Positions 1 to 64,000 of a stretch of DNA of 64,000 nucleotides are shown here, piece after piece. The position numbers and the translations under genes were made by a program. Position 1 is the stretch's first letter; every line of letters begins with the position of its first letter. The stretch is taken from the sequence record OP292654.1; one strand, given 5' to 3'. The notes beneath the pieces were generated by a model. It had not been told where the DNA came from. It saw only the letters and a list, made by a program, of their open reading frames with translations, and did no database searches.

Positions 1-900
1 TATCTGTTCCTGAAGTCCAATGAAAATCTCAGTACTGAAAAATCTAGAACTCACTTCAGCTAAAATCTGAAAAGTACTCTATCCTAAATCTCGATTCTAG
101 AAATTTTGAAGTACCTTTGACCCTCCAGCCTAAATCTCAATAGTACTCGAAATCATTTCTGTACTAGACTATCTCCGAAAGAATATAGAACAAGATGTTG
201 TAACTACAGTTCGAACCACCAGCATATATGTGTATATGTACAGTACTGTAAATGTATCCAGTACTAGAAGAAATATGAAAATAGTGCTGAAAAGGGCTTG
301 ACGGTACGGGGGCGATAGGGTAATATACACACATGGTTCAGGAGGTGGTTAATAGCTGCCAGTACTGAAGCCTAGCCTGGTTGGTGTAGACTGCCTGGTG
401 ACTTGAACCCTCGTGTTCATAGTTTTTCCTCCTTTCTTGCGTTGCTTAGGAAATTGAGTACTAAGCGTATTTGAGTAGCACTTGATGCACTTCGACAGTA
501 CTAGTATTGTGTTCTTGTAAGGTAGATATACCCTAGAGAGTATAGTACTAGTACTGTTAACTTTTAATTGAGAGAGTCCAAGATACGGATACAATTATAG
601 TACTGTATTGGTATTCGATAGACGGATTTATCCCGTCTGCTGTCAGAAGATGGATAGACTTCTGGAAGTGTAGATAGCTGGATGTATAGACGTATAGACG
701 GCTATCCTTCTGGACGGCTAAAAGGCTAGATGGCTATCCGTCTAGATGGCTAGACGTTTAGACGGCTAAATGGTTTTTCTGTCATTTTTCCATTAGCTCC
801 CCTTCCGCGTCTGGTTAGTACCAGGCAGAATCGAAAGCTGTCTTTTCGTGTTGACGTGGTTATATTATCATAGTGAGAGATGAATGCAAGTACTTTTTTC
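1..900. repeat. Non-coding, AGTACT-dense segment with clustered short TAGA(C/T)GGCTA-like repeats (~615-780); possible genome-terminal region
   Basis: No credible ORF; 11 AGTACT sites counted by hand in the first ~605 bp; repeated TAGACGG/TAGATGG/GGCTA words. Confidence 0.6.
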
Positions 901-913
901 AATAAAAATAAAT

Positions 914-945
914 TTGACAGATGAATCCTGGTTATAGTACTATAT
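914..945 (+). promoter_or_regulatory. sigma70-type early promoter
   Basis: TTGACA 914-919; TACTAT 938-943. Confidence 0.75.
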
Positions 946-952
946 CCACACA

Positions 953-993
953 CCAGCGAAATGGGCGACCCTAGAGGGTGGCAAGATCCGTCC
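953..993 (+). ncRNA. Two-hairpin promoter-proximal element, copy 1
   Basis: CCA-GCGAAA-TGG then ACCC-TAGA-GGGT-GGCAAGATCCGTCC; repeated about 10 times in 0.9-16.3 kb. Confidence 0.6.
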
Positions 994-1013
994 GTAGTTT
1001 TTTATATGAATTT

Positions 1014-1059
1014 TGGACGCAATTCCCCACCCCCTGGGGTTCCCGCTTTCTCGCGTCTA
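1014..1059 (-). ncRNA. Two-hairpin element, inverted copy convergent with copy 1
   Basis: Minus strand reads TAGACGCGAGAAAGCGGGAACCCCAGGGGGTGGGGAATTGCGTCCA. Confidence 0.5.
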
Positions 1060-1066
1060 TGTAGTT

Positions 1067-1095
1067 ATTATGCCAGTACTGAGATCATAACGCAA
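1067..1095 (-). promoter_or_regulatory. Minus-strand sigma70 promoter
   Basis: TTGCGT-N17-CATAAT on the minus strand. Confidence 0.65.
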
Positions 1096-1439
1096 GGACT
1101 TTCGACAATCTTTACAAAACTTTTTAGCCCTTCTATATACGCAATATAAAGGCCGTACAGCGTACCAGGAGATTATGTGTCTTAGTACTGTTAAAGGGCT
1201 TAGAACGCGATACAGGAAACAGTAAGTGCATATAAGGAAGGAAAACGAGGATCGAAAGTATTTTAAAGAAAAAGTGAAATAGTCCTTGCATGGTTCATTG
1301 GTTATGATAGTATAGCTCCAACGACAAGAAACACCGCTCTTTAAAAACCTGGCATTCATTACTGAAACAAACATTTACGCGGTTTCGCGAAAAAGATTTG
1401 AGAAAGTACTTGACTGCTGGATTGAGTAGTGTAGAATGT

Positions 1440-1600
1440 CAATTATCGAAAGGCGGTCAGGTTCGCCGGATGATAGGAAACGGAAACAGGGCTAGAATAG
1501 ATAGTACTGTTTCAGCGTATGACCGGATAAGGCAACGTAGCGTTATAAAGGCTAACTAACTGTTAGCGTCCTATCTACCGCCTGGAGATAAACGAAAAAA
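1440..1600 (+). ncRNA. Candidate structured RNA or leader
   Basis: Nested pairings AGGCGGT 1451-57/ACCGCCT 1577-83 and GATAGGA 1472-78/TCCTATC 1569-75; hairpin GCTAAC/GTTAGC 1551-67; downstream of a TTGACT...TAGAAT promoter (~1410-1437). Confidence 0.4.
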
Positions 1601-1725
1601 AAGTTTCTCGAAAGTTGAAAAAGTCCTTGACCGAAAGAAACGAAATGTAGTAAGATGTAATCACTGAGACGCAAGAGCGAATCAGACAAACAAATTAATC
1701 AATCACTTTTAAGAAGGTACATATC

Positions 1726-2427
1726 ATGGCTAAATCTAACAAAACTGTTGTTGCTTCTTCTGTTGAAACTGCTGTTAAAGCTCCGAAAGTAACCCTGAAC
1801 AGCATCGTCCTGGCGACTACTCCGGCTCTGCCAGCCCTGCCGGAAGGTCAGACCGAGCACACTGCCGAAGTACTGGCACAATTTGAAAGCGACGTGACCG
1901 CGTTTGTCAATACTCAGGCTCAGGCACTGGCTGATTACCTGGTAGACAAGTCGGACAGCGTAGAAATCATTTCCCGCCTGCTGGGTGCGACTGTGACGCT
2001 GATCCCTGCGGTACTGGAACGCGAAGCGGAAAACATCGCTAAACGCAAAGCAGAACGCGAAGCGAACCGCAACGCCGCGAAAGCTCAGCGTGAAGCCGAA
2101 GCCGCTGCCGCTCAAAAGGCACTGGAAGAAGAGAAGAAAGCAATGCTGAAACTTCTGCTCGATTCAGGCATGGATCTGACGATGGCGAAAGCAGCGGTTG
2201 AAGCTGGTGCGAAAGCGAAACTGAAAGCGGCTGCGGCTCCGGTTGTGTCTTACGAGCGTGTGACCGTTGAATATAACGGCAAGCAGTACGAAATGCCGGT
2301 AAAAGGTAACATGGGTAACGAACTGAAAGCAATTCTCGCAGAAAGCAAGCTCGACCGCGACGACTTTATCAAGCAATACAAAGTCGAAACCGAAAGCAAC
2401 GCTGAAACCGAAAACGCTGGCGAATAA
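1726..2427 (+). CDS. Ala/Lys-rich coiled-coil protein, possible H-NS/MvaT-like nucleoid protein
   Basis: Strong SD (AAGAAGG), highly expressed-type codon use, long charged helix, C-terminal ...LAESKLDRDDFI; function is inferred. Confidence 0.85.
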   Translation: MAKSNKTVVASSVETAVKAPKVTLNSIVLATTPALPALPEGQTEHTAEVLAQFESDVTAFVNTQAQALADYLVDKSDSVEIISRLLGATVTLIPAVLEREAENIAKRKAEREANRNAAKAQREAEAAAAQKALEEEKKAMLKLLLDSGMDLTMAKAAVEAGAKAKLKAAAAPVVSYERVTVEYNGKQYEMPVKGNMGNELKAILAESKLDRDDFIKQYKVETESNAETENAGE

Positions 2428-2442
2428 TCCCACGGCGTAAAA

Positions 2443-2465
2443 TAAGGGGGCTAAATGCCCCCTTA
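2443..2465 (+). terminator. Intrinsic terminator-like hairpin
   Basis: TAAGGGGGC-TAAAT-GCCCCCTTA directly after the ORF. Confidence 0.65.
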
Positions 2466-2470
2466 AGCAC

Positions 2471-2514
2471 TTCTAACAGTACTGTAATACAATCGGGTAA
2501 CAGTACTGTTAGAA
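2471..2514. repeat. Perfect 15-bp inverted repeat with AGTACT in each arm
   Basis: TTCTAACAGTACTGT 2471-85 / ACAGTACTGTTAGAA 2500-14. Confidence 0.9.
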
Positions 2515-2572
2515 ACGCTTAGAATCAATCCTAGAGCGTTTTAGATACCCTTTTAATTGAGAGTAAACGCCT

Positions 2573-2842
2573 ATGGAACTTAAAGCAATATCAGACCTGA
2601 TTGATCCACGTACCAGGATCGCAAAGACAATGACGGCAACGGGGCCGCGTACTACAGAGTTTAGCGGCTATCTTGCCTTTGTAGTTGGTGGCGTACTGGT
2701 ACAGCGTCGGATCTATGATATGCCTTACAATCATCAATTTGATTCGTGTATGTATATCATTCACAAGAAAGTAAACTATGCCGTAAATCTTCCATGTAAG
2801 CCCATTAGCGGGGCTTTTAACGTAGAATCATTAAAGGCATAA
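2573..2842 (+). CDS. Hypothetical early protein
   Basis: ORF with GAGAG SD-like signal. Confidence 0.65.
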   Translation: MELKAISDLIDPRTRIAKTMTATGPRTTEFSGYLAFVVGGVLVQRRIYDMPYNHQFDSCMYIIHKKVNYAVNLPCKPISGAFNVESLKA

Positions 2843-2982
2843 GCTAACATACAAAACCCCTTAGAACTCGTCACATAGCGTTTTATAAGGGGTTTTATTT
2901 TTGCATCAAAAAAGTAAATTAGTACTTGCATAGTTCGTTCGAATATGGATAATAGAACTTATCGAAACGAGGAGAAACAAAA

Positions 2983-3645
2983 ATGAACTTATTTAAGTTA
3001 GAGCAATATAGAATGGTTCTGGAAGTACTGGAACAAATGAAAGATTGTTTAGACCGTGGCGAGACTTACACTAATGTTAAAGGCAAGCCGTTTAACGTTA
3101 CTCGTCAGTTTGGTATCTGCTGGCACGTATACGCCCATACGCCTAACCAAAAGATGACAGGGATCGGCACTGACTTTATGTGTGGTGCGTTCGCTGAAAT
3201 GGGGTTAGATTCTGCCTATCCGGTAGAGGGACAAAGTACTATCAATCGCGATCATATGCGTATTGCGTTCACTGCTCAGCGTAACTTGTACGACGACGAC
3301 ACGATCCACGGTGCGAACCGGATCAAGCTGGTGGACCGTCTGATTCAGTACTACCGCGAAAAGATGGAAACGCCTGTTAGTGAAACAATGTACCAGCATT
3401 ACTATAACCTTGCGTTATCAGAAATGAAATGGCGTGATACAGCTAACGAGGCTGTTTGGGATGTTCTGGATTTTGAGAACAATCAGATCTGGCCTAGCCT
3501 GGCCGCCTTGATTGTACAGGAAGATCCAACCCTGGGGGAAGTACTGGAAAACTCTGATATTAACTACCCGGACGATCTGACACTGGAAAACATTGTCACG
3601 ACTAACTTACAGGAACGGATTCAGGAAGCGTTAGAAAAGTTATAA
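2983..3645 (+). CDS. Hypothetical early protein
   Basis: GAGGAG SD, upstream promoter. Confidence 0.85.
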   Translation: MNLFKLEQYRMVLEVLEQMKDCLDRGETYTNVKGKPFNVTRQFGICWHVYAHTPNQKMTGIGTDFMCGAFAEMGLDSAYPVEGQSTINRDHMRIAFTAQRNLYDDDTIHGANRIKLVDRLIQYYREKMETPVSETMYQHYYNLALSEMKWRDTANEAVWDVLDFENNQIWPSLAALIVQEDPTLGEVLENSDINYPDDLTLENIVTTNLQERIQEALEKL

Positions 3646-3656
3646 TCTTTACAATT

Positions 3657-3692
3657 TAGGGCTTGACCGTTTCAAGCCCTATATAGTACTAT
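3657..3692 (+). promoter_or_regulatory. Terminator hairpin containing the -35 of the next promoter
   Basis: TAGGGCTTGA-CCGTT-TCAAGCCCTA followed by TAGTACTAT. Confidence 0.7.
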
Positions 3693-3724
3693 GTCAGTAC
3701 ACCAACAAACGGAGCAAAACGAAA

Positions 3725-4066
3725 ATGATGAGATTAAGCGAACTGAAAGGCGTACTTTTCCAACTGGAACAAATCGCACACAAAAGAGGGAACATTGATC
3801 CGATTGTGGAATTGTTCAACGATGATCTTTACGTTGAAGTAGATCTCCAGGCAATCGCAGATGATCCAGAAGGGCAATTGTTGCGTAACGGTACTATTCA
3901 CCTACCAACAAAAGAAATCGTGCGTCGTGGTTTCGCGATAACCTACGGCACGGATCGCGGCGAGGACTCAATCATAATTGACGCCGAAAGTAAAGCCCAG
4001 GCCGAACAATTATTCAAGAAACATTTTAGTTCATACGAATTAAAATTAGTCATCGAAGCAATGTAA
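3725..4066 (+). CDS. Hypothetical early protein
   Basis: GGAG SD, own promoter. Confidence 0.8.
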   Translation: MMRLSELKGVLFQLEQIAHKRGNIDPIVELFNDDLYVEVDLQAIADDPEGQLLRNGTIHLPTKEIVRRGFAITYGTDRGEDSIIIDAESKAQAEQLFKKHFSSYELKLVIEAM

Positions 4067-4080
4067 ATCTTTACAAAACA

Positions 4081-4120
4081 GGGGTTGACTTCGGTTAGCC
4101 CCTTATGTTAAAGTACTATC
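4081..4120 (+). promoter_or_regulatory. Terminator/promoter fusion with cUUCGg hairpin
   Basis: GGGGTTGAC-TTCG-GTTAGCCCC; TTGACT at 4085. Confidence 0.75.
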
Positions 4121-4123
4121 AAT

Positions 4124-4165
4124 CCAGCGAAATGGTCTAACCCACAAGGGTGGGAAGATCCGTCC
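4124..4165 (+). ncRNA. Two-hairpin element, copy 2
   Basis: CCA-GCGAAA-TGG; ACCC-ACAA-GGGT; GGGAAGATCCGTCC. Confidence 0.6.
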
Positions 4166-4185
4166 AGTGATTTTTATATGAATTT

Positions 4186-4230
4186 TAGACAGATCTTCCC
4201 ACTCTCTAGAGTCTCCCGTTTCGCCGGTAT
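4186..4230 (-). ncRNA. Two-hairpin element, inverted copy convergent with copy 2
   Basis: Minus strand: CCG-GCGAAA-CGG and ACTC-TAGA-GAGT (compensatory changes); promoter TTGCTT-N17-CATAAT at 4237-4265. Confidence 0.6.
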
Positions 4231-4329
4231 GTGGTAATTATGCCAGTACTGAAAAAGAAAAGCAAGGAAAAAGAATCGAAAAAAAGTAATTAAATCGCTT
4301 GATCGGTTCTGTGGTTATGATAATATAGC

Positions 4330-4645
4330 TACATCGAAACGACACGGCGAGCCGCCAAAGGAGTTAAGATTTGAACCATCAGGCTGATATCCTGGTGGCA
4401 GTACGTAGAACCCTAAGACGTATAGCGAACCAATAAGACTATACCAGGAATCACAAAGCGAAAGCACATCTATAAGGTGATTGTGATTAGTACTGAAAGA
4501 TTATCAGGTACTTAATAAATTAAACAAACTACTTATTAAATAGCCGCGTAGGTGTGAAGTTCTAATATCGCATTCGTGCCGTGTTAGACGTTCCGAAAGG
4601 AAACCGATTCACCAATTAATGCCCCTCATGCCAGGGGCATTTTTT
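4330..4645 (+). ncRNA. Candidate ~300-nt structured RNA with its own promoter and terminator
   Basis: ACACGGC 4342-48/GCCGTGT 4578-84; TCCTGGT/ACCAGGA; AATCACAA/TTGTGATT; TTCC-GAAA-GGAA 4591-4602; terminator 4618-4645. Confidence 0.55.
4618..4645 (+). terminator. Intrinsic terminator
   Basis: AATGCCCCT/AGGGGCATT plus T-run. Confidence 0.85.
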
Positions 4646-4745
4646 GTTTTAAAATAAAGTAAATTAAAACGAGATAGTACTTGATCATAAATGTGTATGC
4701 TGTATAATTACCTATATCGAAACAGCACTATTAAGGATTTAAAAA

Positions 4746-5129
4746 ATGACCAGAACTGTTTTTCGTACTGTTAAGTTAGAAGATGTTAAGGGCGTTACTA
4801 TCACGGCGAATCGTTGGTTTAATCGTGGCGATGGTAACACATATCATTCTGTTTATTTGGGTGTGTTGATTCCCGTTGAACGTGCTAACGAGTTAGGAGC
4901 TAATTTATATAAGCGTCCTATTTCAGATGGTACTGTATGGATCGACCTGGCACAAGAAACATTCGAATATGGTTACGAGCGTTGTTATGATCAAACGGCA
5001 TTAGCATTGTTTGATGCGGGTTGTTCTGATACAATCGCAGACACTGGAACCCTATCGCGTTTTTGTCGTGAATCAGGGATCGAATTTGCGGAAAATGTTC
5101 ACGATGTTAAACGAAAAAAAGATTTATAA
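4746..5129 (+). CDS. Hypothetical early protein
   Basis: AAGGA SD, upstream promoter with TATAAT. Confidence 0.85.
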   Translation: MTRTVFRTVKLEDVKGVTITANRWFNRGDGNTYHSVYLGVLIPVERANELGANLYKRPISDGTVWIDLAQETFEYGYERCYDQTALALFDAGCSDTIADTGTLSRFCRESGIEFAENVHDVKRKKDL

Positions 5130-5206
5130 TTGATTGTCAAAAGTACTTGCTTATTACGTGCGAGTACTTTACAATGAGTTATCACTTAAGCGAACGAGGT
5201 TTTAAA

Positions 5207-5392
5207 ATGAAAACTGTTAGACCTACCTGGGGTAATGTGGAATGGCCTTTGTTCACTCAGGAGAACGCGAACAAATGCCCTACGGCTCGTTATGTTGGCG
5301 GCATTTCTCGTTGGCTGTGCGAGTGCCGTTTGCCTCGCGAATGTAACGGAATTATTGCGGTAAACGCAATCAAGGCGGTGAAGCATGGCTAA
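5207..5392 (+). CDS. Small hypothetical protein
   Basis: GAGG SD before ATG 5207 (start moved from 5147). Confidence 0.65.
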   Translation: MKTVRPTWGNVEWPLFTQENANKCPTARYVGGISRWLCECRLPRECNGIIAVNAIKAVKHG

Positions 5393-5567
5393 ACAATACG
5401 CAATCGGGTTAGGTAGCAAGGCTTATCCTATTCCGGCAAAGTCAGAACGTGGGGCAAAGAATGCCGCTACTCGCCGTGCTGCTGATAGTGTAGGATATAT
5501 CAGTACTATCAGCAATATGTACATTGAAACACATACGTTTCATAATGGACGCTGGAAACCTGTATAA
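5385..5567 (+). CDS. Small basic hypothetical protein
   Basis: Overlaps the preceding stop; GGTG SD. Confidence 0.7.
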   Translation: MAKQYAIGLGSKAYPIPAKSERGAKNAATRRAADSVGYISTISNMYIETHTFHNGRWKPV

Positions 5568-5623
5568 TCTTTACAAAAGAGGGGTTGACTATTCAATCCC
5601 TTTTATAGTATTATGTATTCACT

Positions 5624-5665
5624 CCAGCGAAATGGACTAACCCTATAGGGTGGCTAAATGCGTCC
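5624..5665 (+). ncRNA. Two-hairpin element, copy 3
   Basis: TCCA-GCGAAA-TGGA; ACCC-TATA-GGGT; follows hairpin-promoter at 5581. Confidence 0.6.
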
Positions 5666-5758
5666 TGAAAATATTATAAATTAAATCGCAAATAGTACTT
5701 GCTTTGTTTGTTGGTTATGGTAATATCTTTATATCAGATACTCTTTGAGGTTAAGAAA

Positions 5759-6340
5759 ATGCGTTACTGGAAAAACTTTGTTAATAGCTTACACAATAGA
5801 ACCAATGATGAAATTATTTCTATGTGTAAATCTGCTGGTCTACAACAATTAGGCAAAGTTAACAAATGGTCTAGTAGAATTGTATTTGCTATAAATGATA
5901 ATTGGGTTATCAAAATCTGTCTATCCGAAATTGGGGTAGAACAAAATGAATGCGAATACCGGTTATGGGATTCTTTAAGTATCGGATGCGAACATTATAA
6001 AAAGTACTTTGCTAAACTTTATCCTGAAATGTGTGATACTGTTGAATATCGTTTTATTGTTATGCAACGTTTAACTAATAGTACTGAAACAAAGAAAGGG
6101 TTAATAGCAGCCGCGAAACGCTATAGCCCAAATACAAAAAAATTCCGTAATGCTATAAAAGATATTGATTTACATTCTGATTTGTGTAACGAGGGAGACA
6201 TTAAAGCATCTAATTTAGGTAAGGATAAAAACGGAAAAATCAAGCTGTTAGACTATGGCTGTAGTCGTAAAGTGGTAAATGCTTTTTATCGGGCACGGTG
6301 GAATAATGACACTGCGAAAGTAATAAAAACTACAATTTAA
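5759..6340 (+). CDS. Hanks-type/PKL-fold protein kinase-like protein
   Basis: Motifs in order: SSRIVF, WVIKI, alphaC E, DIKASNLG, KLLDYG; start moved to ATG 5759 after GAGG. Confidence 0.75.
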   Translation: MRYWKNFVNSLHNRTNDEIISMCKSAGLQQLGKVNKWSSRIVFAINDNWVIKICLSEIGVEQNECEYRLWDSLSIGCEHYKKYFAKLYPEMCDTVEYRFIVMQRLTNSTETKKGLIAAAKRYSPNTKKFRNAIKDIDLHSDLCNEGDIKASNLGKDKNGKIKLLDYGCSRKVVNAFYRARWNNDTAKVIKTTI

Positions 6341-6401
6341 ACTTGCGTTATATGTCAGATTCAAGTACTATGTAATCACACTAAACGATAGGAGCTACAC
6401 A

Positions 6402-6779
6402 ATGAATAAGATCTTCGCAATCCAGGCTGACATTGTAGGTGCACTTTCCCATATCGAAATGATGGGGAAAACAAAAGCTGAATGTCAAAAAGAAGTTGAC
6501 AGATTGAATAAACGCATCAGTACTGAATTGTCATTAGTACGGGAACGTTTCGCCTGTACTACCCTGATTACTTCTATGTTGTGCGTTGTGAATCAGAATA
6601 AAATGTGCCTCGCGTATGAATACAAGGGCAAGCTTTACAGTACTGCTCACAATGTTAAGGGAATGGCAAATACTAACGTTTTACATGATCTCGGTTTACC
6701 TATGGCTGAATGGGATAAGATGCCAAAATTCAGCGTCTGGATCGCATCAGGTAACGTTTACGATAAGTCGGACGTGTAA
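6402..6779 (+). CDS. Hypothetical early protein
   Basis: AGGAG SD. Confidence 0.8.
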   Translation: MNKIFAIQADIVGALSHIEMMGKTKAECQKEVDRLNKRISTELSLVRERFACTTLITSMLCVVNQNKMCLAYEYKGKLYSTAHNVKGMANTNVLHDLGLPMAEWDKMPKFSVWIASGNVYDKSDV

Positions 6780-7068
6780 CCTATAGGGGGCATATTGCCC
6801 CCTCTTAAAACGTGTTGTAGGGGCTTTATGGATCTATTCTATAGTACTAAACGATTAGTTGTAATTTTTACTTGTAGTTCTGATTCGATTTGTTGTATAA
6901 TCTATCGCAAGGGGCAACGGGTAGATAATTGGACTCAGTTACAATCCTATACAATGAAACGGCCAGGCTTTAAACGTCTGGATGACAAAGGCAAAGTGTT
7001 AGCGTGTCGCATGGTACTAAAAGCAATGCGTAATCGTATGACACAATCACTTAAGGTAACGTTAGAAA

Positions 7069-7377
7069 ATGTCTGATAATATTGATAACTTCGCGAAAGC
7101 ATTTACTTATACAACTACTTTCCAGGATGCAACTGGTAATAGAACAGTTGAATGTGATAATGTGTGCCTGGTTAGTCATGGGTACAATCCAGAAGAGATC
7201 TTTACTTCCTGGTTACATGCTGTTAATGTTCGTTATCAGTACGGAAAAGTAATCACCGTACAGGAAGCATTAGCTTTACCTGCTGGTAAAAATCACTTAT
7301 CACTTAAAGGTAAAGTCGATCTTATTGGTGATACTGCTCAATACATCACACATACCACGGCGATCCGTGATTTGTAA
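7069..7377 (+). CDS. Hypothetical protein
   Basis: ORF with AAGG SD. Confidence 0.75.
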   Translation: MSDNIDNFAKAFTYTTTFQDATGNRTVECDNVCLVSHGYNPEEIFTSWLHAVNVRYQYGKVITVQEALALPAGKNHLSLKGKVDLIGDTAQYITHTTAIRDL

Positions 7378-7433
7378 AGTACTAAAAATAGGGGTTGACT
7401 TCGGTTAGCCCTTTGTAGTATTATGTAATCACT

Positions 7434-7475
7434 CCAGCGAAATGGACTAACCCTATAGGGTGGCAAGATCCGTCC
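7434..7475 (+). ncRNA. Two-hairpin element, copy 4 (consensus)
   Basis: CCAGCGAAATGGACTAACCCTATAGGGTGGCAAGATCCGTCC after hairpin-promoter at 7391. Confidence 0.6.
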
Positions 7476-7650
7476 AAAAAAAAGTTATAAATTAAAATGA
7501 AAATAGTACTTGCTTTGTTTGTTCAATGTGGTAATATGTATCACATGGAAGGGCAAGTGAGGATAAAGAAATGAGTCGTAAAGTAGAGTTTCTTTTGTTT
7601 ATCTTTATTGTTATAATGCTATCTGTCGAATTTAATTAAGAGGATATATC

Positions 7651-7881
7651 ATGGCACAGTTTAAAGCAACAGTAACCACTACCGGAATTGGCACAGCGGG
7701 AACTGATACCGTTTTAGTACTGACAGAATATCATAATCTGGAAGACGCAAGCCGATTAATTCAGTTATGGGCAAATGATCAGTATCATGGTAATATTGCT
7801 GTTTGTACTGAAAAACTGAATAACAGCAATGAAGTGTTTGTGTCTGATTTATCAGGTTATCACAAAGTTATTTTGTTGTAA
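7651..7881 (+). CDS. Hypothetical protein
   Basis: GAGG SD. Confidence 0.8.
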   Translation: MAQFKATVTTTGIGTAGTDTVLVLTEYHNLEDASRLIQLWANDQYHGNIAVCTEKLNNSNEVFVSDLSGYHKVILL

Positions 7882-7969
7882 ATCCATTAATAGTACTTGC
7901 TTTCCTTCTGCGAGTACTATATAATGAACTTACTGAAACGCAATAACCATTAATTAAGAGGAAGTTATC

Positions 7970-8173
7970 ATGGCTCAGAAAGATCGTCGTTACTCAATCG
8001 TAGCAGAGTTCACTGGTCACGTATCAGGCAAGAAACGTTTTGTTATTCGTTTCGAAGGTACTCGCGTTTCCGATCATGCGTCACGTCACGAAGCGGAGCA
8101 AGAAGTAAGCCGCTTTAAGAAGTCCGGCCAGGTTCCAAATGTCCAGGGTTCTCGTGTGCTGGTGGAGGCGTAA
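7970..8173 (+). CDS. Small basic hypothetical protein
   Basis: GAGG SD, promoter with TATAAT. Confidence 0.8.
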   Translation: MAQKDRRYSIVAEFTGHVSGKKRFVIRFEGTRVSDHASRHEAEQEVSRFKKSGQVPNVQGSRVLVEA

Positions 8174-8175
8174 CA

Positions 8176-8367
8176 ATGGCTATCCAGATGGTGAAACGTG
8201 AATACACTATCGGCAACGATGATAACACGGATCATCGGTTGAATCTGCTGGATGTTATCAGTACTGTACCGGATTTGACCAACGATGAATTGTGTGCTAT
8301 CATCGATCTGGAAGTGGGAACATCAATTGATATTGATACTAATATCAAAGTGATCCGCACGGCGTAA
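8176..8367 (+). CDS. Small acidic hypothetical protein
   Basis: GGAGG SD. Confidence 0.8.
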   Translation: MAIQMVKREYTIGNDDNTDHRLNLLDVISTVPDLTNDELCAIIDLEVGTSIDIDTNIKVIRTA

Positions 8368-8424
8368 AACATAAAGTACTGGTGAAATATCCAGTACTGT
8401 TTTTATGTACAGCATTATAATTTT

Positions 8425-8470
8425 TAGACGCATCTTGCCACCCTCTGGGGTTCCCGCGTTCTCGCGTCTA
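8425..8470 (-). ncRNA. Two-hairpin element, stand-alone minus-strand copy
   Basis: TAGACGC...ACCC-CAGA-GGGT-GGCAAGAT-GCGTCTA on the minus strand; no downstream ORF on that strand. Confidence 0.6.
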
Positions 8471-8477
8471 TGTAGTA

Positions 8478-8506
8478 ATTATAGGGGAATCTGGTTCTGT
8501 TGTCAA
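8478..8506 (-). promoter_or_regulatory. Perfect-consensus sigma70 promoter, antisense to the gene cassette
   Basis: TTGACA-N17-TATAAT on the minus strand. Confidence 0.85.
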
Positions 8507-8588
8507 GGAAAAGTTTTTGAATTAAATCCTTGCATTCATTCATCGGATAGAGTACTATTATTGTATCGAAACGAAGGAGTGCTTTTAA

Positions 8589-8783
8589 ATGAGAATTCAG
8601 CCAATCAATCCTGTACATGCTTTGTATCTTGACGAACGTAAACGCGAACGTCCTGATGCACCGAAGTTGACAATGGAAAGAGCGATTGAACATTGTAAAG
8701 CAATCGATCCTTCTTTTGTAGTAGATTTAAGCAAGAAAGATATTCCATCTTTCCTGTATAATTCATCCGGTAAATTAACATGA
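8589..8783 (+). CDS. Small hypothetical protein
   Basis: AAGGAG SD. Confidence 0.75.
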   Translation: MRIQPINPVHALYLDERKRERPDAPKLTMERAIEHCKAIDPSFVVDLSKKDIPSFLYNSSGKLT

Positions 8784-8792
8784 GGTAACACT

Positions 8793-9662
8793 ATGTCAAA
8801 GAAAATGATATCCTGGGGTCTGGTCGGTATCGGTGCGTTGGTGCTCCTGATCGGTTTTATTACGGCGGCGTTTACCACGCAAGAAACAGAGCGTACTGTA
8901 GTACTGCGTAATGGTAAATTCGTCGAAGTGGCACAGCCTGGTTTCCATCTGGTGATGCCGTTCGTTACCAGTACTAAGGATATTTCCGTAACAGGCGAAT
9001 CCCGCCGCTGGGAAAAACTTCAGGCATATAGCCGCGATCAGCAGCCAGCAGATATGGCGGTTTCCGTTTCGTTCAACGTGACGCCTGGCCAGGTTGAGGA
9101 TCTGTATAAGAAATATAACACGGTTGAAGCGATGATCGCACGTGTTATTGATCGCCAGGTTCCCCAAGCCCTGGAAAACGTTTTCGGTCAGTATACAGCG
9201 ATTAGTGCTGTACAGGATCGCACACGGCTGGTGGCTGATGTTAACAAGGCCGTGAAAGAGGCTATGAAGAACGAACCTGTAACGATCTCCAGTATTCAGA
9301 TCGAAGGCTTGTCTTTCTCTCCTGCTTATGATAAGGCAGTAGAAGATCGCATGACAGCACAAGTTGCCGTCGAACAGTCGCAGCAGGATCTGGAAAAGGC
9401 TAAGATCACGTCACAGATTCAGTTGACCAATGCCAAAGCCGCCGCTGATTCTAACTATGCTCAGTTGGTAGCAGAGGCGAACGGTATCAAGGCGAAAGGC
9501 GACGCAGAAGCATCGGCAATCCGTGCTAAAGGTGAAGCGTTGAAACAGGCAGGCGACACACTCGTAGCGTATACCTACGCTACCCGCTGGTCTGGTAATT
9601 CTCCTACTACTGTTGTGCCTAATAGCTCACTAACTGGTGTTTCACTGCCAGGCCAGAAGTAA
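8793..9662 (+). CDS. SPFH/Band-7/prohibitin (HflC-like) membrane protein
   Basis: N-terminal TM helix, ERTVVLRNGK...PGFHLVMPF, coiled-coil A-EA-A tail. Confidence 0.9.
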   Translation: MSKKMISWGLVGIGALVLLIGFITAAFTTQETERTVVLRNGKFVEVAQPGFHLVMPFVTSTKDISVTGESRRWEKLQAYSRDQQPADMAVSVSFNVTPGQVEDLYKKYNTVEAMIARVIDRQVPQALENVFGQYTAISAVQDRTRLVADVNKAVKEAMKNEPVTISSIQIEGLSFSPAYDKAVEDRMTAQVAVEQSQQDLEKAKITSQIQLTNAKAAADSNYAQLVAEANGIKAKGDAEASAIRAKGEALKQAGDTLVAYTYATRWSGNSPTTVVPNSSLTGVSLPGQK

Positions 9663-9682
9663 CATAACAGTACTGAAAAGTC

Positions 9683-9706
9683 AAGCCCCTTAATTGGGGC
9701 TTTTTC
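9683..9706 (+). terminator. Intrinsic terminator
   Basis: AAGCCCC-TTAATT-GGGGCTT plus T-run. Confidence 0.85.
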
Positions 9707-9806
9707 TTTTGCATTTTCTTAAAATAACTCTTGCTTTTTATATTCGTTAGTAGTACTATTATCACATCGAAGCGGTTCATGGTGAATCACACGGAGGGTA
9801 GCAAAT

Positions 9807-10007
9807 ATGTTTATCGGTCCATCAATTCCTTTTCCGCTTATGGCTGCTCGTGAAAGTCGCGAAAACCGTGCTAAGTACTTGAAAGGTGCTAGACAGTGGG
9901 AACATAACCACGAATTCCGCAAGATGGATCTTGATCTTGCTCAGTTGTTTAAAGCCCACGAAAAAGCGTGGATGGTAACATATAACCAGGAGATCGCAAA
10001 TGCTTAA
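9807..10007 (+). CDS. Small hypothetical protein
   Basis: GGAGG SD. Confidence 0.75.
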   Translation: MFIGPSIPFPLMAARESRENRAKYLKGARQWEHNHEFRKMDLDLAQLFKAHEKAWMVTYNQEIANA

Positions 10008-10198
10008 GTTTATACTTATCGCCGTTGTGGTATTCTTTGCTTTACGTGGTTGTACTGTCACGTATTCAAATAATAACTGTACCCTGATAATGGGTCAATC
10101 TGGCAATAGCTATACTTGCGAGTAAACATTATCAAAAGTACTTGCTTTATGTATGCGAGTACTTTATAATGATTACATCAAGTGAACGGAGAATTGAA

Positions 10199-10552
10199 AT
10201 GAAAAGAATCGCAGTAGTAGCAATCGCAGTACTGGCATTTTCCGCTGGCATTCATACAGGCCGTTGGGTGGAAGCTAAAAAGAATCCACCTGTTGTTAAC
10301 GTAACAGTAAATCCGGTCAGTACTGTTGAACCGATTTACAATTGTACTATCAAGACGCATGATGATTCTCGTTATATTTCAAACGAAGAATTTACATTAA
10401 CTGCCACACAAATCATTAATATGGAACGTGGGGATATTGTAGGGCATAATCATGTTGTTACCGTTCCTTTATGGAATACTGATAAGAATGAAATGATGGG
10501 GCTTATCAGTACTGAAAATTCATCATTCAATTGTGTATTGGAAAAGAAATAA
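10199..10552 (+). CDS. Secreted or membrane-anchored hypothetical protein
   Basis: MKRIAVVAIAVLAFSA signal-like N-terminus; GGAG SD (start moved). Confidence 0.8.
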   Translation: MKRIAVVAIAVLAFSAGIHTGRWVEAKKNPPVVNVTVNPVSTVEPIYNCTIKTHDDSRYISNEEFTLTATQIINMERGDIVGHNHVVTVPLWNTDKNEMMGLISTENSSFNCVLEKK

Positions 10553-10944
10553 TGGGTCAAAATGTTCATGGGTTGCCTTATGGCGTAGCTAATGCCCTTA
10601 ACGAATTAGCAAAGAATGTTAAGACTGGTCCAGGTGCTGCTAGAAAATACAGAACAGAAGATGATTATTATAACGAATTTGTTCGTCGTAATGGTAATCA
10701 ATCTGGTTTTCCAGTACCGAAAGATGCATTAAGAAAAAGACTGTACAAACGAGCGAAGGAACGTTATAATAAAGACCATCCTCGCGAGTACAAACTAAAG
10801 ACCGTTAATGATATGGTCATGTTTCTGGCGAATAATGGTCAAATCACGGCTTTATGGCAGCACGTAGGTTTAGACATTGAACGGCACGAAATGGCAAAAA
10901 AAGCTATTGACATTTATCAAACAGGTAAGGGGTTACTTAAATGA
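10552..10944 (+). CDS. Basic hypothetical protein
   Basis: TAATG coupling to the previous gene. Confidence 0.75.
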   Translation: MGQNVHGLPYGVANALNELAKNVKTGPGAARKYRTEDDYYNEFVRRNGNQSGFPVPKDALRKRLYKRAKERYNKDHPREYKLKTVNDMVMFLANNGQITALWQHVGLDIERHEMAKKAIDIYQTGKGLLK

Positions 10945-11113
10945 AATATCGTAGCACATACAAGCCAAAACGCAATAGTTATCTGACGGCTGTTACTGGT
11001 TATTATGGTCGGGCACGAAAATAATACTTGCGTTATTCATTCAGTACTGTTATAGTACTTACATCCAGACGGGAAACAAGTTTCCCTGTAAACCACAAAG
11101 AAGGAAAGAACCA

Positions 11114-11482
11114 ATGACTATTCAGACTCACTACTTCGCTACCAGAACTCTTGCTCGTGCTAACGTTGAAGTACTGAACGGCAAGATCAAAGACTTCGGC
11201 AAAGACGCACCAACTGGTGAACGTTGGGCGGTGCTGGTGGAAGTACCAGAACAGCATTCCGAGATTGAGATGCATCAATCAATGGATACTGCGGTTAACA
11301 GTACTATTGACTTCCTGAAGCGTGAACGCCTGATGATGGATGCCAGTACTATCACTAATCAGCGTCCTGGTATCATCGGCGAACAAACTCTGAAAACGCC
11401 AAATAACAAGCCGTGCCGTGTCTCCTGGCGTCGCAGTATGACGGCGGTACGTCTGGCTAAACACTTACAGAAAGTCTCTTAA
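11114..11482 (+). CDS. Hypothetical protein
   Basis: AAGGA SD, upstream promoter. Confidence 0.8.
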   Translation: MTIQTHYFATRTLARANVEVLNGKIKDFGKDAPTGERWAVLVEVPEQHSEIEMHQSMDTAVNSTIDFLKRERLMMDASTITNQRPGIIGEQTLKTPNNKPCRVSWRRSMTAVRLAKHLQKVS

Positions 11483-11532
11483 AATGCGATACAGGGGGTT
11501 ATGTGCCCCCTGTTTATTCCTGGGGTGTATCA

Positions 11533-11775
11533 ATGAAAAAGATAATGGTAGATGATACACAATTACGAATACATTTTAAAGCTCAGACTAAAGTACTTGA
11601 CAAGGCTATTCGTGTTGTGCGAGAATACAAAGGCGGTAATGTAAGACCGCGAAAGCTGAATTGTGGATTGTTCAGTGTGATCGAAGTATCACGCAATGAA
11701 CGTATTGTGATTGACAATGGCAAACTTAACCTAATGACTCATGAACAATATAACAATTTCATCGCTAGGCGTTGA
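11533..11775 (+). CDS. ParE/RelE-like toxin-fold small protein
   Basis: KA..V..Y..G.V.PR.L....S.I.V....R......LM(T/S)HE.YN pattern typical of small ParE-like proteins. Confidence 0.55.
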   Translation: MKKIMVDDTQLRIHFKAQTKVLDKAIRVVREYKGGNVRPRKLNCGLFSVIEVSRNERIVIDNGKLNLMTHEQYNNFIARR

Positions 11776-11822
11776 CAGAATCCCCTAAATATGATTATAA
11801 TAATCGTATAGGGGATTTTATT

Positions 11823-12290
11823 ATGCCAAACAATTTTAAGAACAAGAACGGGGCGTCCATCGCTGGTCATAGTCAAAAATGGGCTAATGATAATCGCCGT
11901 TCAAACAGTCATGATGCTGGTCAAGGTGATCGCGGTTCACGTAACCAGGGAACAGGACTACAAGGCAAGCTAAACACAATGCCTTCTCAGGGTACAGACA
12001 CTTCCCGCATGAATCCAGAAGAAAAGTTAAAGTACTTTAAATCGTTAGGACTTATGCCAGGCCGTGAACCTACACCAGAACCATCTATTAAAGATCTGCC
12101 TAATGTCTTGCGTAAAATGTTCGAAGGTGAACCAACGTACATTAAAGATATTACTACCGCATTAAAGGCCGTGCCACCAGCACAATATCAAGCCGCTGTC
12201 AAGGCAGTATTTCACGCCGCACACAACACAGAATCAGATGATGTTTATGATAAGTATGAAGCTATCATGAACGCAATACAATCAGTTTAA
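11823..12290 (+). CDS. Hypothetical protein with low-complexity N-terminus
   Basis: GGGGA SD; promoter TTGACA 11772...TATAAT. Confidence 0.8.
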   Translation: MPNNFKNKNGASIAGHSQKWANDNRRSNSHDAGQGDRGSRNQGTGLQGKLNTMPSQGTDTSRMNPEEKLKYFKSLGLMPGREPTPEPSIKDLPNVLRKMFEGEPTYIKDITTALKAVPPAQYQAAVKAVFHAAHNTESDDVYDKYEAIMNAIQSV

Positions 12291-12295
12291 AAAAT

Positions 12296-12335
12296 AAGGG
12301 TTGACTTCGGTTAACCCTTTTGTTATTCTATCAGT
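12296..12335 (+). promoter_or_regulatory. Terminator/promoter fusion
   Basis: AAGGGTTGAC-TTCG-GTTAACCCTT, T-run, TATTCT. Confidence 0.75.
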
Positions 12336-12359
12336 ACTGAAAACAACGGAGCAATTGAA

Positions 12360-12710
12360 ATGAGAAAACTTCTTCTGTTAGGTCTGCTGGTGGCTTCATA
12401 CGCGAACGCTGGTACTCAGGTTTACACTTGCCCAAGTTACACACTGTACCAGGGAACGGGGAACGGCAATTATCAGAAAGTAGATAACTCTGCCGCTGAA
12501 CACATTATTCAAATCACTGTAACTGAACCAGTGATTGAAGTACAGGTGAAAGATACTGATATGGAAGTAGTTCAATTCTGGAAAGATTACAGTATCTATC
12601 GTAATGATACTGGCACAATCGAACAGGCCGGATCTATGTTTACCATGAAAACCGCTGTACCACAAAACGGCGTTTATCTTCCTGTCAAGATCGTTTATCA
12701 TTGTAATTAA
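12360..12710 (+). CDS. Exported (signal peptide) protein, possible periplasmic or superinfection factor
   Basis: MRKLLLLGLLVASYANA signal peptide with ANA cleavage site. Confidence 0.8.
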   Translation: MRKLLLLGLLVASYANAGTQVYTCPSYTLYQGTGNGNYQKVDNSAAEHIIQITVTEPVIEVQVKDTDMEVVQFWKDYSIYRNDTGTIEQAGSMFTMKTAVPQNGVYLPVKIVYHCN

Positions 12711-12784
12711 TTTCATTCCAGGGGTTGACATATGTTCGCCCCTGATCAATAATATCAGTACTGAAAACAAACGAGGGTACTACC

Positions 12785-13006
12785 ATGATTGAAGATATGT
12801 TGAGAGAGTTGTTTGCTGAACCAACTGAAGCAGACCTGAAAGCAAATGAAGTTATCGGGCAGATCTGCGAGTTCAATCAGTTTAACCTGATGGGCGTCCT
12901 CCTTCTGAATAACTTCCTGGGTGGATTCGACCGCCAGATCATCGCCGATAAGGTTAGCCCACTGGCAACGCCTTTCGTACTGGCAGATCATAAACTGATG
13001 CATTAA
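12785..13006 (+). CDS. Small hypothetical protein
   Basis: GAGGG SD, own promoter at 12721. Confidence 0.75.
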   Translation: MIEDMLRELFAEPTEADLKANEVIGQICEFNQFNLMGVLLLNNFLGGFDRQIIADKVSPLATPFVLADHKLMH

Positions 13007-13057
13007 GAAAATAAAGGGTTGACTTCGGTTAGCCCTTTTTGCTATACTGTATTCAAT

Positions 13058-13100
13058 CCAGCGAAATGGACTAACCCTATAGGGTGGCAAGTTGCGTCCA
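13058..13100 (+). ncRNA. Two-hairpin element, copy 6
   Basis: TCCA-GCGAAA-TGGA; ACCC-TATA-GGGT; follows hairpin-promoter at 13013. Confidence 0.6.
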
Positions 13101-13251
13101 ATGGATTTTAGTACTAGAAAGTACTGTATAAATGAACAGGTAATTATTTTTAAATTAAAACGTGAATAGTACTTGCGTTATTCATCCAGTACTGTATAAT
13201 CTTTTACATGGATTAGGGAATGGCCTTAATCATTTAAGCGAGAATATCAAA

Positions 13252-62097: not shown

Positions 62098-62130
62098 CAA
62101 CTTTAGGGGATACATTGTATCCCCTTTTTA

Positions 62131-62325
62131 ATGGACAATAATATGAAAGTATCATTCTACGCTAAAGCTGATCCGCAAGTTGGTGATTCAGATATAGTAT
62201 TCTATAAGTGTATTAAAGTTCGGCACTTCTGGTGCTTCAAATTCAGTACTGAAATATCTTACGGTACTGAAACAGAGATGAAAACACTTGCTGATAATCT
62301 CACAAAAATTTATGGAACGTCCTGA
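62131..62325 (+). CDS. Small hypothetical protein
   Basis: ORF. Confidence 0.55.
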   Translation: MDNNMKVSFYAKADPQVGDSDIVFYKCIKVRHFWCFKFSTEISYGTETEMKTLADNLTKIYGTS

Positions 62326-62332
62326 TTTTTTG

Positions 62333-62484
62333 TGCTATAATGTGTATATTAAACAGCAAAATGGCTCTCCATTTCTGGCCTGTAGAATGACAAACAACAT
62401 AAATAGTTACATAACAATAATAATATTTTGACTCCATGTTGTTTTATTACATTCTTTATAGGCCACGCAATGTGGCCTTTTTTA
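62333..62484 (+). promoter_or_regulatory. Promoter plus structured leader with overlapping terminator (attenuator-like)
   Basis: TGCTATAAT 62333-41; long stem 62376-62465 shares GGCCA with terminator AGGCCAC/GTGGCCT-T6. Confidence 0.5.
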
Positions 62485-62497
62485 TTGGATAAAGAAA

Positions 62498-63196
62498 ATG
62501 AATATCACACCTGAACAACAATTAGTACTGGATAAGATTCACGAATATTTCAACGAATTGGGATACCATAATATCATTATCTATGGTTCTTATGTTGAAC
62601 AGTTTCACGGTTTCGATGTTCAACCAAATGACATTGACGTAACTCTTGTGATCGATGAAGAACCACCAGAGAAACGTCACAAAACATTCTACTTGGGATT
62701 CACTGAACTTCCAATTAATGTAGAAATTATGCATCGCAAATCATTCGAAGGTGAACTTCGTTCGATGCAACCAAAGTACTTCATGTGTATTTGTAATCCA
62801 GCTATTCAGAAAGATATTGATATTGCGTTTGATTCTAAATTACCTCATGAAGTGCGTTCATGTATTAGTTCAATTGCTTCTAAAGCATTTGACAAAGGTA
62901 AGAAGAAACTCACCGTAGAAGAAGATTACGATGAAGTACTTGGACTGAAAAATATTTGTCATGCTTTCAAGTTCCCATATTACGCTAAGTGGAAATATCA
63001 TCCTGATACAGCAACCACTAAAGAGCAAGATATTGAGTACTTGAATGAGATTCATAATACAGTGTATGAACTGTACAAAAACAGTACTGGAACACTTGAC
63101 GAGCGTTGTCAGGTTGTGTTAAACTACGCAAAAGCAACGCATAATGCGACAATGACAGGATTCCGAATCCTATTCCCTAAAGAGGTGAAATCATGA
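62498..63196 (+). CDS. Pol-beta-like (minimal) nucleotidyltransferase
   Basis: IYGSYV...PNDIDV...INVE. Confidence 0.7.
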   Translation: MNITPEQQLVLDKIHEYFNELGYHNIIIYGSYVEQFHGFDVQPNDIDVTLVIDEEPPEKRHKTFYLGFTELPINVEIMHRKSFEGELRSMQPKYFMCICNPAIQKDIDIAFDSKLPHEVRSCISSIASKAFDKGKKKLTVEEDYDEVLGLKNICHAFKFPYYAKWKYHPDTATTKEQDIEYLNEIHNTVYELYKNSTGTLDERCQVVLNYAKATHNATMTGFRILFPKEVKS

Positions 63197-63399
63197 TGTT
63201 CGTACTGGCAACAGTTTTATTTTTACTTTTCCTCACAATTGGTGTAGGATTAATAGTACTTGGGGTAGCTCTGTACATGTTCGCATGGGCTGCCAATGGT
63301 AAACATACTTTAGCACCTGTACTTATTTTCGGTTCAGCAGTATCATTTGGATTGTTTACTATCTGGATGGCTTGCATTAACTACATTCAGGTGCTATAA
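63193..63399 (+). CDS. Small membrane protein
   Basis: Hydrophobic, GAGG SD. Confidence 0.7.
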   Translation: MMFVLATVLFLLFLTIGVGLIVLGVALYMFAWAANGKHTLAPVLIFGSAVSFGLFTIWMACINYIQVL

Positions 63400-63641
63400 T
63401 GTCACCTGAAAAGATGTTAACTGATTTGATGGCAGTTGGACCAACCATTCTTCACTTTATTATTTCTATATTAGGAATTGCTTTAGTGATTGGTGGTATG
63501 CGTGACATAAACAAATCAACGCATTTTCAACATATAGTAGAAGTGCCAATTGGATTTACTGGTGTAATCGTTGGTCTAGTACTAATGTATTACGGTGGAG
63601 CATTCCCTGTTATCTGGAGAATCATTAAATGGGTGAGTTAG
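63399..63641 (+). CDS. Small membrane protein
   Basis: 2 TM, TAATG coupling. Confidence 0.7.
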   Translation: MSPEKMLTDLMAVGPTILHFIISILGIALVIGGMRDINKSTHFQHIVEVPIGFTGVIVGLVLMYYGGAFPVIWRIIKWVS

Positions 63642-64000
63642 CATTCGCTTTGATTGAAATGATTGTAGAACTGTTATGTATGGGTGCGGCGGGTCGTTGG
63701 ATTCTGCTTTGTCTTATCACGCTCGGAGCTATTGTGGGCTTCGGGTATTGGGCTTATATTAGCTAAGGAACACAAATGAAACAATTCACTAAGGGTCGTA
63801 TGTCATTCCGTTAAGGTACTTTAACTTAACGAAGGAGGACATATGTTCTTTGATCAAACCTTTAAAATCTACTTCGATGATGGACGTTTTGTAGAAACAG
63901 ACGATTTGTTGGGATGGCTTCGTACCTATCCTGGCGGTGCTGAGAAATTTTACTACCGCATGAAATGGTTATGTAAATATGACCGTCCAAAGTGGGGATA

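Follow-up and report, generated by a model that had tools for sequence, protein, structure and literature searches.

The palindromic hexamer AGTACT is a selected word of DNA in the jumbo myovirus XbC2, kept by selection acting on the DNA and not on the encoded proteins. The window analyzed here, a stretch of 64,000 nucleotides, corresponds with 100% identity to bases 1-64000 of Xanthomonas phage XbC2 (OP292654.1), whose whole genome begins with it. This phage belongs to the genus Mimasvirus in the RaK2/CBB/GAP32 group and has a genome of 367,901 bp with a guanine-plus-cytosine (GC) content of 37.5% (38.1% in the window). We tentatively propose, as a plausible rather than a probable reading, that AGTACT is the recognition hexamer of a putative dyad-symmetric (dimeric) phage DNA-binding protein, which would bind it as an operator where promoters lie in the terminal repeat, and elsewhere as a mark spread densely over the chromosome. 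The copies in the window can be described as follows.

1-64000, either strand: scattered AGTACT, 257 copies (4.0/kb), in all three frames and between genes, in unique contexts.

A previous reading of the window from its letters alone (hereafter the sequence-only reading) had reported AGTACT to be over-represented throughout, with only about one site per 3 kb expected at low GC. Both statements hold, as the GC content of the window gives that very figure and 100 dinucleotide-preserving shuffles contain 17.6±4.1 copies with a maximum of 26. AGTACT ranks first among the hexamers of the window in both frequency and over-representation (12.2x the zero-order expectation). Genome-wide it is the commonest of all hexamers, with 1105 copies against 122 expected from composition (9.0x) and a mean spacing of one per ~330 bp. 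Markov models of orders 0 to 4 predict 21, 18, 40, 106 and 222 copies in the window (257 observed), those of orders 3 and 4 seeming to account for the count only because the motif itself inflates AGTAC and GTACT.

It could be argued that this excess merely reflects codon usage, dipeptide composition, a bias in dinucleotides or in GTAC, repeats, or the purging of other palindromes. No tetramer is more over-represented than GTAC (2.4x; AGTACT makes up 36% of its copies in the genome and 42% in the window), and the expectation for AGTACT in coding DNA rises from ~110 at zero order to 142 in whole-codon and 246 in synonymous shuffles as codon and dipeptide content are taken in. However, the codon shuffles refute the argument, to which we give practically no credence: the coding DNA of the genome has 976 copies against 246±15 when synonymous codons are shuffled within genes (z ~49) and 142±13 when whole codons are shuffled, and that of the window has 190 against 47±6 and 22±5, respectively. 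The excess extends to all frames (493/148/335 copies against 128/40/78 in the synonymous shuffles, i.e. 3.8x, 3.7x and 4.3x), and the synonymous null is conservative because the motif raises the usage of its own codons. The genes used for shuffling came from a greedy ATG-based caller of open reading frames (ORFs; 574 ORFs, 91% coding), which matches GenBank for the first genes and adds two doubtful minus-strand ORFs in 1-1725. The ratio of observed to expected copies lies between 2.8 and 5.5 in each 20-kb bin, and is 4.0 in plus-strand and 3.6 in minus-strand genes. Non-coding DNA of the genome, with 4.0 copies/kb, is at least as rich as coding DNA; the unique 22-mer contexts of all 1105 sites rule out repeats as the source, and the next palindromic hexamer reaches only 1.7x. 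The excess is thus real and no artefact of codon, amino-acid or low-order k-mer bias, the very biases that the sequence-only reading had named as capable of explaining it away.

Comparison with the closest relative, Erwinia phage Kaldavass, of which 48 kb were aligned at 89% identity, shows that the sites are conserved beyond their surroundings. AGTACT is intact in both phages at 79% of sites as against 56% for control hexamers in the same frames. Third codon positions are identical in 92.1% of cases inside AGTACT and in 79.6% in the same codons outside it (p=2.5e-9), so that synonymous changes inside the sites are ~2.6-fold fewer than in the same codons elsewhere. In the DNA-polymerase region retention of AGTACT exceeds that of controls at every divergence down to RaK2, with individual sites turning over and their number remaining approximately constant. 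Codon shuffles, site conservation and third-position identity therefore support, at the DNA level, the positive selection that had been suspected from the letters alone.

A neutral directional process, such as mismatch repair of the very-short-patch type or a context bias of the polymerase, might in principle yield the same excess of a functionless word. The uniform observed-to-expected ratio over gene classes, frames and strands, together with Poisson spacing, is the pattern of a genome-wide mutational process, and repair restoring AGTACT would also imitate conservation. However, the known effects of very-short-patch repair are far below 9x, and the one-mismatch depletion expected of a word driven by such repair is absent: the 18 one-mismatch neighbors of AGTACT have observed-to-expected ratios of 0.48-3.28, none being strongly depleted and those that keep GTAC being enriched. 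Nor are gained and lost sites confined to one mismatch class, as sites private to XbC2 or Kaldavass show differences at all six positions and many substitution types. Both observations favor selection over replenishment by biased repair, and the same logic was used by Xu, Lawrence and Durand for HIP1 (PMC5861425). Further, the fourfold extra non-coding density in the terminal repeat and the fixed register at its promoters, which are described below, require selection. We regard a neutral origin as decidedly improbable.

The XbC2 paper reported, using PhageTerm, a non-permuted direct terminal repeat of 17,581 bp (PMC11273794); by this call base 1 is a physical end and window 1-17581 is the left repeat copy. 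In agreement with it, the Kaldavass record begins at window position 17582, the inner repeat border, and the first 22 nt of XbC2 are kept at the left end of phage CBB. Non-coding DNA of the repeat has 55 AGTACT in 4.8 kb (11.5/kb) as against 2.7/kb in other non-coding DNA. One part of this excess is a terminal cluster, for which the sequence-only reading had correctly given 11 copies in the first ~605 bp, and most of the remainder lies on promoters.

1-17581, no strand: direct terminal repeat, left copy, with 96 AGTACT (5.5/kb).
31-604, no strand: 11-copy AGTACT cluster at the left physical end, gene-free and homologous to the CBB left end, the sites at 242-247, 457-462 and 550-555 being among those kept there.

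Two classes of promoter carry the word in a fixed position. The first has an AT-rich upstream element and AGTAC fused to TTGC(T/A)T, often with a second AGTACT one base before TATAAT; when both boxes are present they are 20-21 bp apart, which is two helical turns. In the second the -35 element is TTGAC(T/A) and the box comes after the -10 or overlaps it.

5142-5175, plus strand: two-box early promoter, AGTAC-TTGCTT (-35), AGTACT at about -19 to -14, TACAAT (-10), box starts 21 bp apart.
7892-7925, plus strand: two-box early promoter, AGTAC-TTGCTT ... AGTACT-a-TATAAT, boxes 21 bp apart.
10137-10170, plus strand: two-box early promoter, AGTAC-TTGCTT ... AGTACT-t-TATAAT, boxes 21 bp apart.
13168-13200, plus strand: two-box early promoter, AGTAC-TTGCGT ... 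AGTACT-g-TATAAT, boxes 20 bp apart.
1405-17154, plus strand: one-box promoters of the same class, AT-rich element and AGTAC fused to TTG(A/C), with AGTACT starting at 1405, 2921, 4676, 5694, 7505, 14344, 16344 and 17149.
12324-16004, plus strand: second promoter class, -35 TTGAC(T/A) in a terminator-like hairpin and AGTACT 3 nt past the -10 (TAT(T/A)CT-atc-AGTACT), approximately at the transcription start.
12333, 13879, 15616 and 15999, plus strand: AGTACT starts of the second class.
4112 and 16262, plus strand: related TA(A/T)AGTACT overlapping the -10.

All 12 positions at which AGTAC-TTG(C/A) had been placed on a -35 element from the letters alone are present within ±1 nt. The parallel claim that AGTACT overlaps many -10 boxes stands only in that such overlap exists, TAGTACTAT occurring five times in the window; "many" was an overstatement. 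Four further promoters have AGTACT-N-TA(T/C)AAT. At 4073-4120, 7383-7430, 12289-12340, 13007-13050, 15572-15625 and 15955-16005 the -35 TTGAC(T/A) is in the loop or stem of a GGGG...CCCC hairpin that is followed by a T run, and these elements are a terminator and a promoter fused in one.

When promoters were sought without regard to the word (TTGNNN-N16-18-TATAAT), AGTAC was found on the -35 in 5/7 cases in the XbC2 terminal repeat and 8/18 in that of CBB, as against 0/40 in the other 350 kb of XbC2; AGTACT at -19 to -14 gave 3/7, 13/18 and 0/40 in the same order. The class with AGTAC on the -35 is confined to the 17.6-kb terminal repeat. A scan of 2.9 M IMG/VR contigs with the pattern AGTACTTG-N12-15-AGTACT-N-TAWAAT recovered 95 unique instances of the two-box layout, nearly all of them in 345-378-kb RaK2-like contigs; the carriers include RaK2 (seven in 11 kb), 121Q, CBB, GAP32, BF and fHe-Yen9-04. 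A few hits fell in short, unrelated GC-rich contigs; two IMG/VR contigs with high GC that do not look RaK2-like (42.6 and 25.4 kb) have the layout as AGTACTTGACAGCG...GGAGTACTGTATAAT. Only at terminal-repeat promoters does the word keep a constant place with respect to -35 and -10 that orthologous promoters share: promoter-associated copies amount to a few tens of the 1105 sites, and the register does not apply to the ~1000 intragenic ones. AGTACT is hence no general sigma70 promoter element, as 14/60 promoter-like sites genome-wide have it nearby compared with 16.5% of random non-coding windows. AGTACTTG was rejected as a word of its own (71 copies against ~66, not enriched beyond AGTACT), and TTGCTT was rejected as a T4 MotA box, its distance to the -10 being 15-17 nt as against the published 11-13 nt.

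The form of the word is also informative. Its palindromic extension CAGTACTG is the most enriched octamer in the genome (176 copies, 41x), and hexamers that retain GTAC with one outer base changed are at 1.8-3.3x, whereas those with a changed core are near 1. The resulting hierarchy, CAGTACTG > AGTACT > NGTACN, is of a graded kind typical of a binding energy landscape. Relative to local background the flanks favor C-1/G+1 (~1.5x) and T-4/A+4 (1.3-1.4x) and disfavor G-1/C+1 (~0.5x). The graded variants and palindromic flanks together indicate that the preference is itself graded and dyad-symmetric. Only the contiguous AGT|ACT is enriched, tests of spaced half-sites (AGT-Nk-ACT) and of GTAC pairs having shown no enrichment. 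The spacing is Poisson, with exponential gaps and a variance/mean of 1.04 for 1-kb counts; we detected no helical or other periodicity, no preferred pair distances up to 150 bp and no motif deserts.

Among the RaK2-like phages sampled, AGTACT is enriched 4.5-9.8x in Kaldavass (162 copies in 50 kb), GAP32, CBB, Serratia BF, Yersinia fHe-Yen9-04, 121Q, RaK2 and ten IMG/VR contigs, and the more distant XaC1 reaches 11.7x. There is no excess in the PA5oct-like Pseudomonas phage MIJ3 (0.4x), the T4-like RB69 (0.5x), the KVP40-like VH7D (1.0x) or one distant IMG/VR contig (0.9x). The presence of the excess in all RaK2-like phages sampled and its absence from the other relatives tested indicate an origin of the word in the stem lineage of the clade. 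It is kept in at least six phage genera, whose AGTACT-rich members infect Klebsiella, Escherichia, Salmonella-like, Cronobacter, Serratia, Yersinia, Erwinia and Pectobacterium hosts, and retention across so many host genera points to a phage-borne cause rather than to the system of any one host.

A host reader deserves mention nonetheless. SlmA of E. coli, the nucleoid occlusion protein, binds the 12-bp palindrome GTGAGTACTCAC, which contains an AGTACT core, and to our knowledge it is the only E. coli factor with such a core; phage DNA could then activate SlmA and so block cell division. SlmA is present in the Enterobacterales, on which the clade mainly grows, the motif is missing from sister clades that infect Pseudomonas, and stopping host division is a common phage strategy. 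However, the flanks are the opposite of those required, G-1 (0.40x) and C+1 (0.34x) being the least used and the outer GT/AC showing no preference, while the 12-mer has no exact match and 12 sites within two mismatches against 29 expected. Moreover, the T4-like RB69 infects E. coli without having the motif. As the flanks avoid the SlmA context, identity with the SlmA site was rejected, and the host-protein reading as a whole appears very unlikely.

The sequence-only reading had suggested that AGTACT is a self-mark enriched as the target of a phage methyltransferase, with 29974-30519 as the candidate gene. This gene (XbC2_56) indeed encodes a Dam-family N6-adenine methyltransferase (PF05869), and two further DNA methyltransferases, XbC2_148 (PF01555) and XbC2_400 (PF00145), are present in XbC2. 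Six-base palindromes are typical targets of such enzymes, the closest analogue of AGTACT, HIP1, is methylated (PMC5861425, PMC4390886), and incomplete digestion by EcoRV was described for XbC2 (PMC11273794), although EcoRV patterns are sparse in any case, the genome having only nine copies of GATATC. Kaldavass, ~89% identical over the aligned part of the window and equally enriched, has orthologues of all three enzymes, the PF05869 one being 99.4% identical, and yet its Nanopore native-versus-amplified methylome comprises GATC, CCWGG and TGCAT, without AGTACT (PMC11780129); its three methyltransferases thus match three other motifs. Similarly, phage Hallingskeid, which falls in the AGTACT-rich 74-75% DNA-polymerase group, has two methyltransferases and is modified at GATC and CCWGG only (PMC11780129). 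A motif with ~1100 copies would be hard to miss in these methylomes, and methylation of AGTACT in XbC2 is hence unlikely. In addition, protection by methylation predicts a neutral site and not a ninefold excess under purifying selection. The nominated gene is therefore not supported as the cause, and we consider methylation or another base modification an improbable explanation of the word. As for the unexplained modified motif of Kaldavass, TGCAT, we observed that it is strongly depleted in the XbC2 genome, where TGCA stands at 0.32x.

The sequence-only reading had also named a DNA-organizing or packaging protein and a Chi-like signal, roles that are conceivable. More serious than the preceding rivals, if still rather unlikely, is the possibility that AGTACT serves some transaction on DNA, whether by attenuating a helicase-nuclease in the manner of Chi or as the preferred site of a primase, a nickase, a recombination endonuclease or the type II topoisomerase of the phage. 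On a linear genome with recombination-based replication a palindrome can be read from both sides, and a dense, scattered word under selection in coding DNA is a trait shared with Chi. The density of AGTACT peaks at physical ends, as in the 11-copy cluster, and XbC2 encodes Mre11/Rad50-like, Cas4-like (PDDEXK) and helicase proteins in addition to a type II topoisomerase. True Chi, GCTGGTGG, is likewise over-represented, with 33 copies in the genome as against ~3 by composition and, in the gene-sense orientation, 23 against 11±2.5 in codon shuffles (~2x). In the terminal repeat Chi lies on the plus strand at 3327, 8158, 9227, 11233, 12386, 15856 and 16361 and on the minus strand at 216 and 12174. 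The seven plus-strand copies are so oriented that they would confront an exonuclease coming in at the right end, and a single copy of the other orientation is found 216 bp inside the left end, a layout that looks like protection of both ends from RecBCD. Enrichment and placement together suggest that end-protection signals are under selection in XbC2. Known Chi sequences are asymmetric, however, which weighs against a Chi-like role for the palindromic AGTACT, and primase sites of three bases need no hexamer. The register of the boxes to -35 and -10 in ~95 promoters is not expected of such a signal, and because of it we prefer a duplex-binding protein. The Nanopore work on Kaldavass reported no motif-associated nicks (PMC11780129).

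A protein that reads AGTACT, its identity and the effect of its binding are matters of inference; the proposed dimeric protein would be made or carried by the phage. The terminal repeat would be the first DNA expressed, and its boxes lie on the -35, between -35 and -10 at -19 to -14, on the -10 or at the start site (~-40/-35, -19/-14, -9/-4 and -3/+3). At these places a bound protein would clash or compete with RNA polymerase, and the boxes may therefore form an operator by which pre-early promoters are switched, in the simplest case turned off; a site that shuts off this class would appear to fit the box positions better than an activator site. Through the other ~1000 copies, randomly positioned in all frames and all classes of gene, the same protein would be loaded over the length of the chromosome. 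The sampled 50 kb of E. coli K-12 DNA has three AGTACT (~0.06/kb) and phage DNA ~3/kb, so that the latter would offer a target ~50-fold denser. Such loading could serve genome organization, protection or the buffering of a regulator. Several points weigh against this proposal. No binding protein was found among the candidates examined, namely two annotated small regulators and ten proteins of the terminal repeat and adjacent DNA: the former, the HTH_37 protein XbC2_536 and the PrlF-like XbC2_499, were rejected as they are detectable only in Mimasvirus, a range narrower than that of the motif, and the latter gave only SPFH and DUF932 matches. A thousand extra sites bring a regulator no obvious gain, and the genome-wide layer needs a second, hypothetical function. 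No architecture is apparent from the Poisson spacing. Duplication of a single promoter cassette could have handed down the promoter boxes without independent selection of each, and a strand-level process working in both orientations would also favor a palindrome.

It is conceivable, though we would not rate it as likely, that the RaK2-like phages, whose bases are ordinary and which lack a nucleus-like shell, use the density of a word to mark the chromosome as their own, with the AGTACT protein nucleating on phage DNA or coating it and the same protein timing the pre-early promoters. If so, word-density marking would let a phage treat its own and host DNA differently in protection, transcription shut-off and nuclease targeting. 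Proteins that behave in the manner proposed for the AGTACT reader do exist. The p6 protein of phi29 and TF1 of SPO1 bind throughout the chromosome of the phage with a maximum towards its ends, repress early promoters and recognize phage and not host DNA. The likeness is one of working and not of family membership: p6 reads bendability, TF1 reads hydroxymethyluracil DNA, neither reads a hexamer, and no homologue was found in XbC2, although no search aimed at one was made.

Of known phenomena the closest is HIP1 (GCGATCGC) of cyanobacteria, also a short palindrome that is many-fold over-represented across a clade (PMC5861425, PMC4390886). Both words occur in all frames within genes as well as between genes, in excess of what codon or peptide content explains, and for both the conservation among relatives exceeds the background, a finding that favors selection over biased repair. 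They differ in that HIP1 is an octamer of cellular genomes and AGTACT a viral hexamer; that HIP1 is methylated by cognate orphan methyltransferases, whereas AGTACT is apparently unmethylated in two members of its clade; and that AGTACT has an added position-fixed role at early promoters. HIP1 has been reported as quasi-periodic over 10-90 kb, whereas no spacing of this type was seen for the Poisson-distributed AGTACT in 1-kb counts or in pair distances up to 150 bp. Chi (GCTGGTGG), KOPS and uptake sequences are comparable as over-represented, scattered oligomers of coding DNA that selection or drive maintains and by which a machine that processes DNA tells self from foreign. Unlike AGTACT, a perfect palindrome with palindromic flanks, they are asymmetric, biased in strand or orientation, and have known readers.

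The excess of a palindrome is all the more unusual, as the sequence-only reading had held it to be for a phage, because XbC2 is an extreme case of restriction-site avoidance. GCGC is absent (450 expected), as are 25/64 palindromic hexamers, including GGTACC and CGTACG despite the excess of GTAC. GGTCTC/GAGACC and all GGYRCC, GRGCYC and CYCGRG sequences are also missing from the genome, GATGTC/GACATC occur 0 and 1 times, and GGGAC six times against 168 expected; Kaldavass and XaC1 have the same avoidance. AGTACT goes the opposite way at 9x, with the next palindrome at the 1.7x given above. Loss of short palindromes is a known trait of phages, and the clade purges them more thoroughly than almost any other; yet one of them is its most frequent hexamer and is under purifying selection that can be measured. 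We found no earlier description of this excess in the papers on XbC2, Kaldavass, CBB and RaK2 or in a comparative review of jumbo phages, and literature searches on jumbo phages gave nothing relevant. If a reader protein exists, it would constitute a new kind of phage chromosome recognition system and a tractable counterpart of the 30-year-old HIP1 puzzle. The two-box promoters offer an immediate experimental handle. ScaI/RsaI fingerprints and AGTACT density provide a simple marker of the clade in metagenomes.

Some other features of the window and genome may be noted. Close to the left terminus, at 650-776, there is a gene-free, iteron-like block of 8/16-bp units (TAGACGGCTA / TAGATGGCTA), which is at least 90% identical to CBB in flanking DNA of ~60-70% identity and may be a packaging or replication element. 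An inverted repeat at 2464-2521, between the first two genes of the terminal repeat, has 22-nt arms that are 91% complementary, with ACAGTACTGT in both. The genes of the repeat include those for an SPFH/Band-7 protein (8793-9662), to which the CBB annotation assigns a structural role in the virion, and for a DUF932 protein (14726-15568). Just inside the repeat border, 17647-24093 holds 11 successive ORFs of similar size (435-660 bp), five of which were searched without a Pfam match; in XaC1 the corresponding location is occupied by a longer array. No RNA family of Rfam matched in the window. Elsewhere in the genome, one of the 34 phage tRNAs in GenBank (292074-292147, 'tRNA-Pyl') has the anticodon CTA and may be an amber suppressor. 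Finally, the host entry of OP292654.1 is Xanthomonas vesicatoria, and the nearest relatives, at 85-97% protein identity, infect Erwinia, Cronobacter, Pectobacterium and Serratia; given also the GC content of 37.5%, the host assignment or the host range would merit checking.

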